From Vitrella brassicaformis CCMP3155 (lineage: Eukaryota > Protista > Chromerida): DNA of 64,000 nt. Each line of letters starts with the position of its first letter. Within the stretch, counting starts at the first letter, position 1. The notes beneath the pieces are model-generated. The model was not told the DNA's origin. It saw only the letters and a program-made list of their open reading frames with translations, and searched no databases. Where the stretch lies: NCBI GenBank assembly GCA_001179505.1, contig CDMY01000393.1:1-64000 (forward strand). The letters run 5' to 3'. Positions 9,901 to 36,060 of the stretch are shown piece by piece. The position numbers were made by a program, and so were the translations under genes.

Positions 9901-12691
9901 GCTCGTCTGTGTTGTGTGTGTCAGGTTCAAGCGCACCAAGGACCCCCACAAGCTGACTGACGACGACAACGAGAGGGATGACGGCGAGAGTGCCGACCGC
10001 CGACCCCCTCTGCTGCTGCAGTTCGAGGCGCCCCTCTTCGCCGCACTCCGACAGACACTCCAGCCCGACTGCCCGCCTCCGATCGCCATACTCGGGCTGC
10101 ACCTGCTGTTCGAGCTGCTCACCGGACGTACGCAAACCCACCAAGAAAAGAGCCTCCATCTATGCAACACGTGCCATTTCCTCCTTCGCTTCGTCCCACA
10201 GATCTGTTCTCATCGTCACGTCGGCTAGTTCAGCTGCTGCTGGGCCCCCTGCAGTCGCCATTGGCATCGTCATCGTCATCGTCAGCAGCAGCGGCATCGA
10301 GCAGCAGGAGGGCGGATTTGGGCGCTGGTGGTGGTGGTGGTGCGGGGAGTGACTGCAACAGCGACCTGGAGAGCCACATGCGGTTCAATCCGTTCTTCTG
10401 CGAGCGGGAGTCGTCCAAGCTGCACCTCTGCCGCATCAAGCTGGCGTGTCGCGTGGCGGAGGGAGAGGGCGACGTGGGTGTCGATGAGATCAGGCCATAC
10501 CTCCCTGACCTCACCAGACACGTGTGGCTGCTGTTCCGGTGAGTAAGGGGGGTGGGTGGTCGACACAGGGGCGTTATGGATGGATGGTGGTTGGTTCCTT
10601 TCTGTGGTTCAGGGATTGTGTGCTGCTCCAGTCTGAGATGTCGTCGACGTTTCTCCGCAGCTACCAGCCATACAGCCTCGTCATGGCGGACTGCAAAGCC
10701 CTCGCCTCAACCTACCGCACCATCCTCACCGACACGACCCTATTCAGAGGCCTCAACGCCCTCGCCAGACACAACCACCTCCAGCCCCTCATGCAGCCCG
10801 CAGCCAAGCCGTCCTCACCCACCCCACCATCCCCACCGTCTGTCATCATCCTGGGCTATGCCGTCCACAGGCTCACCCAACTCGCGTCGCAGCGAGGCAA
10901 AGATGGGGCGCTTGGCGGCAACGATCTGAGTGCGTCGTTTCGGGAGCTGGGTGTGGGCGACTCGGCTGTGGGCGAGAGTGAGGTGACTGAGATGCGGTGC
11001 ATTGTCGAGTGTGTGCGGCATCTGATGGGGCTGCGGCGGGAGGGCGGGGGAGGGGTCGCCGAGAGCGATTGGGGTTTCGCTGAGGAGGTGCTGAGAGGGG
11101 TATGGGAGGCGACCTTCCACCACACCGACCCCACTGTCAGGTCAGAACGAACCCACCATGCACGCCATGTGACACACTTTATGTCTCCCTGCTGCATGGT
11201 CATGTCATCATCAGGTCGATGCTTCTGCCCGATCTATTGGCCCTTCTCAACCACTTGACGGTCAACCTCCCCCGGCCGTCATCCTCGCCAGGCGACCCCT
11301 GCCTGCCCTTCTGGCACACGCTCGCCCGAGCCTCCTTCCAGCTGTGCGTCGTGGCCTTCAACACCATCGCGTCCTCACACCCATCGGCATCCGCCAGTCT
11401 TGTCCCGCTTGTCTATGACTTCTACGCACTGTGGCTTTCGACCATCACACCGGTGACCCACGGTCGACTCAGCGCCTTCTGGTGGCTGCTCTTCGTGTCG
11501 CCCTTCCCTGTGGACGTCCTGCTCACACACGGGAACCCACAGCCGGTGCTCAAGGCGTGGCGACACATCTGTCGGGCTCTCGCGGACAGCACAAGCCCGG
11601 CCTCGTCTCTGTTGGTGCTGAGGTGGCTGTTGGGAAGCCAGGATGAGCACCTGAGAGGCCGGCTGCTCAAGAACGGAGTGGGGGAGAGGCCAGACGGCGA
11701 GGGGGCGTTGAGCAGGGCGGGGTCGCTCGGGTCCCAGGCGTGGGCTAGCGAGAGGGAGGAGGCTGAGAGGGCGGCGCTGGTGCTGTTCGCTTTATTTGTC
11801 ACAACGCTATCGCATTTCGACGGGTTTGACCGCAACGTTGACAAGCGACAGCTGGCGAAGAGTGCCGGCATAGCCCGTGGACTGTTCGACGCTATGATTT
11901 ACGGCGACCAGGACGGCCTGCCCGTCACCCTCCCCCTCCCTCTGTCCATGACCCAGAGCCCGATCGTGTCGTCGCTGCACAACCTGCTCCAGTCGTCCAA
12001 TTGCCGCTGGCTGGTGCCCTCGATGCTCGCCACCCTTTCCCCATCCCTCCTTCCCCTCGTCCGTGTGGCACCCCCTGTGTTGGTGGTCCCTTCCTCCCCA
12101 CCGGTGTCATCATCTCTCATGAAAGACAGCGACGAGGAGTTCGGTCTCTCCAACGGCAAGGTGGGCGAAGACGTGCTCGAGGCCCTCACAGGCTGGCACG
12201 GCCTGCAGCTGTGTCTTGCCGCCATGACCGCCAGCGCCACCAAGGAGAGCGAGGCCGCTGCATGGGAGGGCGTGGCTCGGCTGGTGCTGGTGCTGGCGAG
12301 TGGGTGCCTGGAGGCGCTCATGGATGCGGCCATCGGGGCGAATTGCATCGTCAAGCGGACGGACGGCGAGCAGCAGCAGCAGGAGTGGATCAAGGTCTCC
12401 ACTGGCGGGGCTGGGGAGCTGTCGGGCTACCACCGCACCATGGCAGCAATGCTCCTGGACTTCGCGTCACGCCACCAGGATGCCTTCAAGACAGCGCTCG
12501 GCACGGCACTCTCAGCACGGCAAAAGCAGCTTGTGGAGGCTCTGTTACGCGCACATCTGCCGCAGATGGCCAAGAGAGAGGATGGGAGGGAGGCAGAAAG
12601 GGGGCAGCAGGGGAAGCGGCAAAGGAAGGAGGGCCCTGTCAAGGCAGCGCAAGTCAAGGGGGGTAGAATCGAACTGAAAATGCAGTTCTAG
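3903..12691 (+). CDS. HEATR5: HEATR5/SWEETIE/Laa1-family large HEAT-repeat protein (AP-1 accessory factor), many exons
   Basis: N-terminus LRTLPSLL..DAIRKHQKHL..PTQVIKRLLAVNLVLLYRHGDS matches the HEATR5 N-terminal pattern. HEAT-like segments follow (LADKAPCVRAAAYKCLGAL, VRWAALEALTALL) and the C-terminus GRIELKMQF resembles the family's terminal motif. GT-AG introns link the ORF pieces. Confidence 0.85.
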
Positions 12692-31757: not shown

Positions 31758-32788
31758 TGACATGCCCACAGAAAGGTGGCATGGCATGGCGGGGTGGGGT
31801 GCTCATACACAACAGACAGACAGACGCGTTCGTCTGTCCTCACCTCGCGAGCCCGAGTGTCTTGAGCTTGGGCAGATCCTTCAACGTCATGATCAGCAAG
31901 GCGATGCCACTGTCACCCAACCGGTTCCTGCCATGCCAGCGGGAGGGACACAAACCAACAAACCAACACACCAACACACACACTCTTCATCCCATCCTCG
32001 TATGTATTAGCCCTCTCCCTGCCTGTCACTCGGTCGCTCGCTGACCTGGAGACGTCGAGTGTGACGATGCCGTGCATGTGGAGATGGAAGCCCCGCAGCA
32101 GCTTCCACGAGTAGACGTGCGGGCAGTATAGGCCGACCACCATCCTACCCAGACCGCTGTCACCCCCCTTCTCCACCCCGCCAGCGCCGCCATCGCTGCC
32201 CGTGGCGCTGCTCGAACCCCTCACTATCGGCGAGTGTGTGTGCCTCGGCGTGGCGCCGCCGCCCGCCTGAAGCGTCAGGCTGAGAGACCGGTGAAGAGGC
32301 TCCGGCTCTGGCGGGTGGTCCACCTGCATCACTGACGACGACGAACGGACCACTGAACAGAACACAACACACAGCACCAGACAGACAATCATCTTCCATC
32401 CATCCATCTATCTCAGGTCATGCTCACGTGCTTCCTCAGGCGGCAGGTGTGTATGCGAGACGGTCTGCAGTGCGTCCCTCACGCCGGTGGAGGCCAGGCG
32501 GAAGCGCAGCACGTCCTCGCTCCCCAGAGACGACACGACCAGCCACACGGTGTCCCTCGCCAGACACTTGATGTGGTCACCGCCCTTCGTGACCTCCCTC
32601 ATAGCCCGGCTCGTCCCTTTGCTCTTGAGCCGCTCCATCTCTGCTGCCGTGGCCCGACGCGAATACCGGTACCCCACTGAGTCTCCGGTGCCGCCTGTTG
32701 TGGCCGTGGCTGCTGGTGCGTCACATTGTGCTGATGGCTGCGGGTCATCGGGTGCGAATCGATAGGCCCAGTGGGATGACGGCCACAT
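28568..32788 (-). CDS. F-box-like + RNI-type leucine-rich-repeat protein with a ~550-aa Pro/Ala-rich tail
   Basis: F-box-like DTVWLVVSSLGSEDVLRFRLAS. LRR exons include LQSLNLNDCKF, LDLSNCGLGDSGATSVASGLEANSTLQSLSLKFNDI, LVVLDLYWNRI and FLHLYGNRI. A phase-compatible link (KFK|RKHRG..YK|STSFPRD) joins them to the 573-aa ORF. Confidence 0.8.
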
Positions 32789-33112
32789 GATTGATGAGAG
32801 GGATGGTGGATGAGTCAGTCGTCCGTCACGATGCTCTTCGGAACCAGATGATGACGAGATCACAAGACATCCGAGTCAACGAGAGCCTTGCGTCAGGAGC
32901 GCGAGAGATGAGCCTCAAACTTCAAGCTCGCAAATGTCAACCGATCTTCCGCGAACACCTTCTTGGAACACCAGCTGTGAGCCAAGGCATCACAAGATGA
33001 CCGACATCTGCCATTTCTTTCGCGAATCGCAACGGTATGAATGATGATGCTGTCTGCAGAGATGTCATGAGGAGCTAATGAGGAGCGGCATCGCTTGACG
33101 GGATGAGACCTC

Positions 33113-34613
33113 ATGTTCGTCCGCCTGCTCATGCTCTTCCTCGGCTGCTCAAACAGCTGTCGTGAAGGCCTCAGCACTGCACCTGCCCTGCATCGGACGC
33201 TCGTGTTCATCGCGCTTCCCGCTACTGATCTGAAGCCCTATCGGCCTGTCCTGCGTTCGCACTGTCCCGCCATGGAGATGAAAGCCATATCCCCTCCCAC
33301 CACTGCAGAGAAACCCCGAACAACGCGGTCAAGGCGCTCTCGTAGGTCCCGAGAGCCCATCACGGTGCCTGCCTTCGAAGAATTCGACTCCGATATTGTT
33401 CGCTCGATGTGCGAGCGGGAGCTGAGATGGTCGCCGGGGAAGCATCTGTTCCGCCAACATCGGCAGATCGACGCCTGGTATGACGGGATGGTGGCCACAG
33501 TGGGGGAGGAGTATGTTGAGTTCCTGGTTGGGCTGCTGGTGGCTGCGGGGAGTGCCGATATAGAGGGCGGTACGCGTGAGGGTGGCGGGGCATCGCTGCG
33601 TTATCAGCTGGAGCTGCGGACGCACCAGCTGGACCTGTTGCTGTTCGTCCAGTGGGCGCTGGGGTGCGGGGTGCTGAGGGCAAAGAGGTGGCACGGCAAG
33701 ACCAGGCAACCTGTCGCTTACTCACTCCAGTTCCGCGACAGAGACTCCATCCTTAAACTCGCAAGGCTCTTCTCAGGTATGTGGTGTGTTGAGTAGAGAG
33801 AAAAGATACGACTGCAGCATGCTGCATGACTCTCTCTCGGCTCTTGTTTGTGTGCTCTCTCTCTCTCTCTCTGTGTGTGTGTGTTGTGTGCAGGTCGTGT
33901 GTGCAATCCCATGGCGCAGCGTCGGTTATCTGAGTGGCTGCAGATCGCCAATCTCCGCTTTGATGGCTTCTGGTTCGATCCCCTTTTCCCCGCCCCCGAG
34001 GAGACCCCGCCCGCACAGCTGGCCGGCTTCCTCGAGATCGTCGGCATCTTCACCGCTCGCATCTTTGAGGTCAAGAAGAAGAGGTCATTATCTGACGGCA
34101 GCAGCACCGCCACCGATGACAGTGGAGATGGCAATCCTCCACGAGCGTCGACAGCCCCCGGCATCCACCTAATGTTCCGGTCGCGCACTTGTAATGCCAC
34201 GCTCTCTTCCTACCTCAAGACGATGGTCCAAGGTGGGCAGATCCTCCCTGACGGCTCTTACGCGTGGAAGGGCCGCCATCCGAGTGACTTCAAGCCCCTC
34301 CTCACCCGGCTGGACCGCACCCCGCCGCTGTCAATGGTGCGGCGAAGATCTGTCGGCAAGTGGCGACGGCTACTAAGCAAAATGGGCGATGAGGAGAGCC
34401 TCAAAGCGTATGCGAGGCGCATCAATGACCACGTCGACCGGTGCTATGCGCACAGGCGGCAGGGGCTGCCCGGGAAGTTTGTCTATCGGCCGCCGGGCAA
34501 GGCGAGATCCAGTGACTTCCTCAGTGAGGAGTATCTTGGTGCTTATCGGTTGCACGGCCACTGGCGCGCGATGCTGTCCAGGTGGCGGAGGAGTGGGCGG
34601 GGGGAGGGGGAGG
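33113..34613 (+). CDS. Nuclear two-domain LAGLIDADG homing-endonuclease-like protein, catalytic residues substituted; 3' end runs into a gap
   Basis: Motif 1 LVGLLVAAG (33524-33550), then YQLELRTHQLDLLLFVQWALGCG and YSLQFRDRDSILKLARLFSG. GT-AG intron at 33777-33893. Then RVCNPMAQRRLSEWL, motif 2 LAGFLEIVG (34019-34045) and RLDRTPPLS..KWRRL..YARRIN. Confidence 0.7.
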
Positions 34614-34913
34614 NNNNNNNNNNNNNNNNNNNNNNNNNNNNNNNNNNNNNNNNNNNNNNNNNNNNNNNNNNNNNNNNNNNNNNNNNNNNNNNNNNNNNNN
34701 NNNNNNNNNNNNNNNNNNNNNNNNNNNNNNNNNNNNNNNNNNNNNNNNNNNNNNNNNNNNNNNNNNNNNNNNNNNNNNNNNNNNNNNNNNNNNNNNNNNN
34801 NNNNNNNNNNNNNNNNNNNNNNNNNNNNNNNNNNNNNNNNNNNNNNNNNNNNNNNNNNNNNNNNNNNNNNNNNNNNNNNNNNNNNNNNNNNNNNNNNNNN
34901 NNNNNNNNNNNNN
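34614..34913. other. Assembly gap (300 N) flanked by G-rich runs
   Basis: Run of N. Confidence 0.99.
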
Positions 34914-34914
34914 G

Positions 34915-34945
<31 letters not shown>

Positions 34946-35457
34946 CGGCATAGGCGGGTAGAGGACCGACTTACTGACCTCTTCTCGCTCTAGCCAGGGG
35001 GTGGGTGGTACGTATGTGTCCGTCCGGTGGAGGGCGAAACGGCTGATGGACATGGGCAGGGCACGTGGCCATGAGACTGACTGACTTGATTTGATACATA
35101 AGATAACGATGCCATCGACACACACATGCCTTGAGTCCGATAGATCCGATCCGCCCCATCGACAATATGTCTGTCTGTCTGTCTGTGTGTCTGTCTGTCT
35201 ACCAGTCAATAATCCGCATGCACAAGGCCTTCCTTGCCTGGCTAATATCGATGATAGCCACACGACCACCGCCTTTCCTTTCCGCCACCTGTACACCTGA
35301 CCTGCATCCATCCCCTCTGCGCAGCGCACAAACACCATACATGAATGACACCACAGCACAGCCCCTTCTCGTGTCTTCTGTTCGCAAAGTGTCCCGGCTT
35401 ACTCTGGTGGTGTGGTGGTAATGAGTCAGTCCATCAGTATGGCGAGGCAGAGGCATA

Positions 35458-36060
35458 CTACGCCTGCACGTGATACTCTCTGGGGAAGCACGCGGGCGGC
35501 CCTCTGAATATCTTGGCTCCGACGGTATGGAGGCGGTCGGGAGGCTGCTCGGTGAGATTGGGCATGTCAGTAATCTGCCCAGCCGACCTATAGATGTGAC
35601 TGACAGGCAGGCAAGCAGACGGAGGCGTGGGACGGGCAGATGTCGTGTCGTTTCGTGGGTGTGTGAGCCTACCGGTATTCTTGGCACACATGACGAATGT
35701 GGGCAGGAAGGAGGCAGAGACACATTCATCGAAGCTGCAGAGTCCTTCGTTGTCAGCGTCATGTACCTTGGCACACTGAGCACCCCATGCAGCAGCACAC
35801 CACGAAGAAGTCTGCAGCCAGCCAGCCAGACAGACCAACAACAACACAATGTGCACACGTCGCCCGCATTGCCCTGGCAGTAAGTGCTGTGCTGTTCTGA
35901 CCTTCTGCGCAGTCTGTGGGCGGGATGTGGTATTTCTCTCGTATCTTGGTGCGGTAGTACCAGTTGAGTAGGATCATGGCCACCGCAAAGGCACCGGCGA
36001 GAAACCCCAACGCCACCACGGCAGGATGATGCTCCCACACCTCCTGACACACACACACAA

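Follow-up and report, generated by a model that had tools for sequence, protein, structure and literature searches.

A spliced nuclear gene of Vitrella brassicaformis for a putative, highly diverged two-domain LAGLIDADG protein without the metal-binding acids

Domesticated or degenerate LAGLIDADG proteins are a known kind, with OTP51 of plants, WhiA of bacteria and HO of yeast among the described examples. Here we analysed a window of 64,000 nucleotides from the chromerid Vitrella brassicaformis CCMP3155 (assembly GCA_001179505.1, contig CDMY01000393.1, positions 1 to 64,000), in which a nuclear gene at 33113-34613 on the plus strand carries two LAGLIDADG-like motifs. The chromerid lineage is the closest photosynthetic relative of the apicomplexan parasites, a group with unusual organelle genomes and poorly known organelle nucleic-acid factors. 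A stand-alone, intron-containing, doubly inactivated LAGLIDADG protein in an alveolate nucleus would be new, and our literature search found no paper linking LAGLIDADG with the nuclear genes of chromerids or other alveolates. If the more specific, tentative version of our reading given below is true, no stand-alone domesticated LAGLIDADG protein would have been described in alveolates before this one, and confirmation of its fold and function would extend the recruitment of retired homing endonucleases as nuclear-encoded binders beyond plants, bacteria and yeast. Its present value is that of a well-defined test case, one orphan gene without orthologue or context; an earlier note made from this DNA alone had called it the best candidate for an undescribed system, which is an overstatement for a single gene without a partner.

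Among the closest described systems is OTP51, which combines a tract of pentatricopeptide repeats (PPR) with two LAGLIDADG motifs and acts in the splicing of ycf3 intron 2 (PMC9459714). Like OTP51, the Vitrella gene is nuclear, is interrupted by a spliceosomal intron and encodes two degenerate LAGLIDADG motifs, and its product is presumed not to cut and is predicted to act on nucleic acid. In OTP51, however, the long PPR tract supplies RNA recognition, whereas neither PPR nor any other Pfam domain was found in the Vitrella exon products, including amino acids (aa) 1-221. The two proteins also show no detectable sequence similarity, belong to an alveolate and to land plants, respectively, and differ in that no organellar intron is known as a substrate in the present case.

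The double-motif LAGLIDADG_1 (PF00961) endonucleases and maturases of the I-AniI, I-OnuI and I-DmoI types offer a second comparison. Like the Vitrella product with its two putative domains, they have two domains of ~120 residues and a spacing of ~126 residues between the motif helices, with the conserved elements in the same succession, and those of organelle introns and phages are the nearest language-model neighbours of that product. Unlike them, the Vitrella product fails the Pfam model, carries Ala and Val in place of the metal-binding acids and has N- and C-terminal extensions, and its gene is nuclear, contains a spliceosomal intron, follows the codon bias of the host and does not lie within a group I intron or intein.

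Two further systems differ in kind or in state. WhiA, a bacterial regulator of sporulation and cell division, has a C-terminal helix-turn-helix and matches PF10298 and PF02650, whereas no such Pfam match was obtained for the Vitrella exon products, the C-terminus being incomplete at an assembly gap. UMAG_11064 of Ustilago maydis is a mitochondrial homing endonuclease gene in the nuclear genome; it is a recent arrival of the GIY-YIG type with mitochondrial codon usage and a mutated active site, shows no significant transcription and was judged non-functional (PMC7593156). Both UMAG_11064 and the Vitrella gene are organelle-type, homing endonuclease-like genes that reside in a nucleus with an altered active site. 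The Ustilago gene, however, provides the picture of a decaying copy, from which the Vitrella gene differs in type (LAGLIDADG-like), in its host-like codon bias and in its intron and spliced transcript.

A spliced and transcribed nuclear gene

The window is scaffolded eukaryotic DNA, broken by four 300-N gaps and rich in GC (58.7%), a value matching the 59.6% reported for Vitrella plastid-reference transcripts (PMC6668581). The N-gapped scaffolds and the 2015 ENA runs also agree with PMC4501334. The gene is real, nuclear, intron-containing, spliced and transcribed. Its start codon, ATG 33113, is preceded by an in-frame TGA at 33104-33106. The coding part of exon 1 (33113-33776) comprises codons 1-221 and the first base of codon 222, as given by the translation of the open reading frame (ORF) and by RNA contigs (X1 records 2 and 3, X2 record 5). 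It is followed by a phase 1, GT..AG spliceosomal intron of 117 nucleotides (nt) at 33777-33893, which begins with GTATGT, finishes with TGCAG and has a CT/GT dinucleotide repeat at its 3' end; unspliced read-through of this intron meets a stop at 33794-33796. The coding part of exon 2 (33894-34613, aa 222-461), supported by sequence, translation and RNA, stays open up to a 300-N assembly gap. When joined, the two exons form 461 codons without a stop before the gap at 34614.

Public RNA and DNA-like runs were mapped onto positions 32300-36000. Contig record 3 of RNA run X1 (872 nt) maps to 33606-33776 and 33894-34594, and the two mapped blocks adjoin in the record (positions 702 and 701) with no letters between them, demonstrating the exact removal of intron 33777-33893. 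The claims of the earlier note that the gene is nuclear and intron-containing, and the intron boundaries that it gave, are thereby borne out, 33776 being joined directly to 33894. The 5' part of the gene is represented by X1 record 2 (33060-33590) and X2 record 5 (33225-33645). No RNA cover was found over 32424-33043 or from the gap to 35151, which puts the start of the transcript close to 33060 and its end within or just past the gap. In contrast to the RNA contig, the DNA-like runs X3 and X4 retain the unspliced genomic sequence up to the CT/GT repeat of the intron. Their depth over the locus (~21 and ~13) equals that of the flanks, which shows the locus to be single copy. Every mapped run is identical in sequence to the window.

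The composition of the reading frame is coding-like. G+C at codon positions 1, 2 and 3 is 0.61, 0.51 and 0.73 (position 3 > 1 > 2) versus 0.49 in the intron, and the third position is enriched as it also is in the neighbouring gene. At this composition, 461 stop-free codons would arise by chance with a probability of ~9e-7, and each of the other five frames contains 7-19 stops. The locus itself is ordinary nuclear DNA between intron-containing genes, since the downstream neighbour is also spliced and the gene is itself split by a spliceosomal intron. Neither a group I or archaeal intron nor an intein encloses it, and it is not a free-standing gene next to a target site, these being the locations of an active LAGLIDADG endonuclease or mobile element.

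The C-terminus of the protein and the gene's 3' end are concealed by the gap at 34614-34913. Its edges are G-rich (34594-34613 and 34914-34956), reading GGGGAGGGGGAGG and a G run of ~30. No RNA or DNA contig spans it, and a search for other assemblies that might close it likewise returned none that does. Because all DNA and RNA contigs halt at the G-rich edges, the missing sequence is probably short and of homopolymer type, and it could encode poly-Gly in the frame of the gene.

Two putative LAGLIDADG domains with altered motifs

The features listed in the earlier note are all present in the sequence, and its two helix motifs were placed on the motif columns of LAGLIDADG profiles by hhalign. 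Motif 1, LVGLLVAAG (aa 138-146, 33524-33550), aligns with the LAGFIDGDG columns and has Ala145 at the metal-binding position; motif 2, LAGFLEIVG (aa 264-272, 34019-34045), has Val271 there. The two packing-helix motifs are 126 residues apart in one chain, within the spacing of roughly 100-130 expected for two such helices. Putative domain 1 (aa ~128-245, 33494-33964) is delimited by the ESM Atlas, hhalign and the order of elements in a low-confidence model; it is split by the intron and includes LRYQLELRTHQLDLLLFVQWALGCGVL (33596-33676) and NPMAQRRLSEWLQIANL (33905-33955). Putative domain 2 (aa ~255-385, 33992-34384), delimited by hhalign and the ESM Atlas, contains GIHLMF, CNATLSSYLKTMVQGGQIL and TPPLSMVRRRSVGKWRRLL (34319-34375). 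All these features lie on the plus strand. The earlier note had placed the intron between the domains. The intron stands, but by the profile alignments it falls, at aa 222, within the last helices of domain 1 and not strictly between the domains.

Conserved in both halves are a packing helix, a strand, the pattern H/D..LL..(I/V)...LG.G(I/V), two paired strands and a helix that bears (P)(L/M)...(R/K)R...(E/K)W. The domains are preceded by an N-terminal extension of ~125 residues and followed by a C-terminal extension of at least 60. Domain 2 further carries a low-complexity Ser/Asp/Gly/Pro insert of 28 residues (aa 284-311, 34079-34162) at the expected first beta hairpin, seen as a gap of 21-26 residues in the hhalign alignments and given no secondary structure by the model.

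The fold assignment draws on the ESM Atlas, a protein-language-model feature search that was blind to the LAGLIDADG idea of the earlier note. For domain 1 (aa 100-221), the nearest family was LAGLIDADG_1 (0.92, 188 of 256 features shared), and all ten best named matches belonged to one clan. LAGLIDADG_1 was also nearest to exon 2 (0.89, 162 shared features), and the core of domain 2 was nearest to an unnamed phage cluster (0.90) and then to LAGLIDADG_1 (0.89, 167 shared). By the Atlas's own calibration, the domain 1 result is fairly strong and those for exon 2 and the domain 2 core are leads.

Profiles were built from two sources, namely 42 IMG/VR loci retrieved by a back-translated LAGFIDGDG pattern and 120 PF00961 proteins retrieved with the alignment of these loci. 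Against the double-domain profiles, hhalign gave one colinear alignment with both motifs on motif columns (P 0.07-0.08; score reached by 2-3 of 120 shuffles). Domain 2 scored 24.6 against the C-terminal-domain profile (P=0.0021), as high as none of 500 full or windowed shuffles, and domain 1 scored 18.4 against the viral single-domain profile (P=0.0099), matched by two of 500 shuffles. The metagenomic and phage double-domain PF00961 proteins used for the C-domain profile (P0008-P0121) have LAGFIDAEC as their second motif, with Glu for Asp at the metal position, followed by Cys. Scores against the deeper profiles from the 120 PF00961 proteins were non-significant for domain 1, as were those of domain 2 with the single-domain and N-domain profiles; these other pairings did no better than shuffles (P 0.12-0.28). 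Tests with hmmsearch --max and phmmer were marginal (domain 1, p 0.004-0.03; domain 2, p 0.013 to non-significant); in phmmer against 151 LAGLIDADG proteins, domain 1 reached p ~0.02-0.03 and domain 2 was non-significant. Given that roughly five profiles were tried per domain, the sequence evidence suggests LAGLIDADG ancestry but does not settle it. Combined with two independent language-model results and the colinear architecture, it makes this ancestry, in our judgement, quite probable.

All alignments pair the second Asp of LAGFIDGDG with Ala145 in motif 1 and with Val271 in motif 2. No acidic residue occurs in motif 1, and the Glu269 of motif 2 occupies position 6, which is non-catalytic. 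The metal ligand of I-CreI-type enzymes is motif position 8 (Asp20 of I-CreI). With Ala145 and Val271 at this position, canonical LAGLIDADG nuclease activity is, on the aligned residues, excluded, in agreement with the loss of metal-binding residues proposed in the earlier note.

A non-cutting binder and the competing explanations

We consider the gene to be best explained as a functional single-copy nuclear gene for a highly diverged two-domain LAGLIDADG-fold protein that binds nucleic acid without cutting it, an explanation held with moderate confidence. Because the metal-binding acids are lost, the product is most likely a DNA- or RNA-binding protein without cutting activity, like other retired LAGLIDADG proteins. 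In the proposed mechanism, each half would keep the order of the LAGLIDADG core, with a packing helix, a strand pair, the helix-turn carrying H/D..LL..(I/V)...LG.G(I/V), a second strand pair and the closing helix with (P)(L/M)...(R/K)R...(E/K)W. The two packing helices would meet in the pseudo-dimer interface usual for the family. Ala145 and Val271 in place of the acids would preclude canonical DNA cutting and leave DNA or RNA binding that is specific for sequence or structure. The first beta hairpin is part of the DNA-contacting sheet in a LAGLIDADG domain, and the disordered insert in that hairpin of domain 2 may reshape the nucleic-acid-binding saddle.

Several results weigh against this explanation. 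The double-LAGLIDADG assignment of the earlier note finds backing in the language-model neighbours and in our own best profiles but none in curated collections: the Pfam search it had proposed as a check (hmmscan against Pfam-A at E<=10) returned no LAGLIDADG family (clan PF00961, PF03161, PF14528, PF05204, PF10298) for either exon product, the same was true of NCBIfam and PHROGs at E<=10, and phmmer against all PDB chains at E<=10 returned noise only. Apart from the best pairings, most hhalign comparisons gave P 0.05-0.28, with the score reached by 16-29 of 80-120 shuffles, and the number of profiles tried counts on the same side. The Atlas 'recognition' value for exon 2 is 1995, below the 2300 mark. 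Single-sequence AlphaFold2 models of the two halves, made with no alignments, had a predicted local distance difference test (pLDDT) of 38 and 44, and Foldseek against the PDB and VIA-align wide with these low-confidence models returned noise only; the element order in the domain 1 model does fit the LAGLIDADG core. RNA depth over the gene is low (~7-10). No homologue was found from which purifying selection, as a ratio of nonsynonymous to synonymous substitution rates, could be estimated. Group I or group II introns are not known from chromerid organelle genomes, so that an OTP51-like maturase role would lack an obvious substrate. Introns are also never mentioned in a paper on transcript processing in chromerid plastids.

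Three rival explanations were considered. That the gene is LAGLIDADG-derived but functionless, a retired endonuclease gene drifting neutrally and still transcribed at a low level, appears unlikely to us. It would account for the loss of both catalytic acids, a divergence too great for curated models, the lack of an orthologue in any search, the shallow RNA cover, a 5' leader crowded with upstream ATGs and the disordered insert within a core hairpin. A neutral copy so diverged would, however, be expected to gather stops and indels, whereas the frame is open over all 461 codons against the many stops of the other frames, is enriched in G+C at third positions like the neighbouring gene and is kept across a precisely spliced intron. 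An origin outside the LAGLIDADG family altogether, with a lineage-specific orphan in which hydrophobic helices and G-rich turns merely happen to look like the motif, is improbable in our view, even though Pfam, NCBIfam, PHROGs and the PDB are blank, the structural models are uninformative, several hhalign tests stay at the level of shuffles (the default run covered 22 motif columns only, P=0.052) and Atlas scores near 0.9 arise in 4-10% of shuffled proteins. Chance would have to make two separate halves each nearest to LAGLIDADG_1 among thousands of families, one of them with 188 shared features, set both motifs ~126 residues apart on motif columns in colinear alignments, and yield for each domain a best profile score that shuffled sequences equalled in none or two of 500 trials. 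Finally, a still-active endonuclease using other metal-binding residues, such as Glu269 (position 6 of the domain 2 motif), is very improbable: this residue lies two positions ahead of the canonical one, but the canonical positions align to Ala145 and Val271, the ligand of I-CreI-type enzymes sits at position 8, and the domain 1 motif is without any acid.

A more specific version of the non-cutting binder is that the chromerid nucleus recruited a homing-endonuclease scaffold as a sequence-specific binder that does not cut, serving either as an organelle factor on fragmented organelle DNA or RNA or as a nuclear DNA-binding regulator. We put this forward only tentatively. An endonuclease-linked origin has been proposed for AP2 domains, which the nuclear-regulator alternative would echo.

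When exon 1 was compared exhaustively by phmmer with 1.84 billion representatives, the search returned no credible homologue, and neither the Logan-recorded exon-1 ORF nor any other self-match. Its sole match, P0001 (1747 aa, six near-identical repeats), is spurious, with a summed score inflated by the repeats and an alignment on aa 88-122, outside the domains. Word-index searches with exon 2 and with domain 1 gave no match, two metagenome scans found no relative, no paralogue occurs within the window, and BLAST showed no similarity between domain 1 and domain 2. Weak curated or sequence matches to DUF7599, CotI, a RimK-related protein and a nascent chain were dismissed as noise. Existing records carry the exon-1 ORF, with a tail from intron read-through, only as a 227-aa prokaryote-style call without Pfam matches, on ~2.1-kb Logan contigs of ERR558200 (L043, 2149 nt); these contigs end at the intron repeat.

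Protein start, predicted location and neighbourhood

The predicted location of the product depends on which start codon is used. The minimal 5' leader seen in RNA comprises 53 nt (33060-33112), X1 record 2 starting at 33060, and contains four upstream ATGs at 33062, 33067, 33078 and 33103, the last of which starts a 20-codon, out-of-frame upstream ORF running across ATG 33113 to 33165. The context of ATG 33113 itself is weak (gacctcATGt, with C at -3 and T at +4). Only from this codon is the hydrophobic, signal-peptide-like N-terminus MFVRLLMLFLGCS made (aa 1-13, 33113-33151; mean Kyte-Doolittle hydropathy 2.17 over aa 1-11). It is followed by a basic, hydroxylated stretch rich in Ser, Thr and Pro, up to the basic Arg/Ser run RTTRSRRSRRSR (aa 69-80, 33317-33352), which is compatible with the tail of a transit peptide or with a nuclear localisation signal. 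An alternative in-frame start, Met54 (33272-33274), has a strong context (cccgccATGg) and is the first ATG in any frame past the overlapping upstream ORF. Starting there, the protein would read MEMKAISPP..., with no signal peptide and with the Arg/Ser run exposed.

Plastid targeting in chromerids uses a bipartite signal, a signal peptide followed by a transit peptide, with weak conservation in Vitrella of the Phe that follows the cleavage site (PMC6668581). The product of ATG 33113 has, from its sequence, the form of such a bipartite signal, with no Phe at the plausible cleavage sites of the hydrophobic leader, and the use of this start codon is doubtful. The basic Arg/Ser N-terminus made from ATG 33272 would be consistent with either a mitochondrial presequence or nuclear localisation. 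The organelle leader suggested by the earlier note thus keeps its hydrophobic N-terminus and basic stretch, but is made doubtful by the four upstream ATGs and the weak context at 33113, compared with the better context at 33272, which skips the hydrophobic part. Overall, we lean slightly towards an organelle as the location, with the nucleus a possibility of modest weight and any other compartment somewhat less likely than that. The RNA contig starts directly after ctgtctgcag, which resembles a 3' splice site, indicating that an unassembled, non-coding upstream exon is possible.

Downstream of the gene, RNA run X2 shows three splice joints in a minus-strand neighbour (35209-36000 and beyond). 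Two of these are clean, with CT..AC on the plus strand (35317-35402 and 35812-35901). At the third (35601-35766), the plus strand reads TG..AC and the contig has six other letters (GGTATT), so the boundary may differ from the window. A transposon reading of the locus, raised by one foreign contig that touches 32395-32412 and 35815-35835 in opposite orientation, was rejected, both sites being tetranucleotide microsatellites. These sites are touched by many foreign contigs and consist of catc and cagc/caga repeats, not of the terminal repeats of an element. Elsewhere in the window, a long ORF on the plus strand (11102-12688) matches Pfam TPR_LAA1_C (E 7e-08), of the eukaryotic LAA1/HEATR5 type, and is the sole one of the ten long ORFs tested to have a Pfam match.

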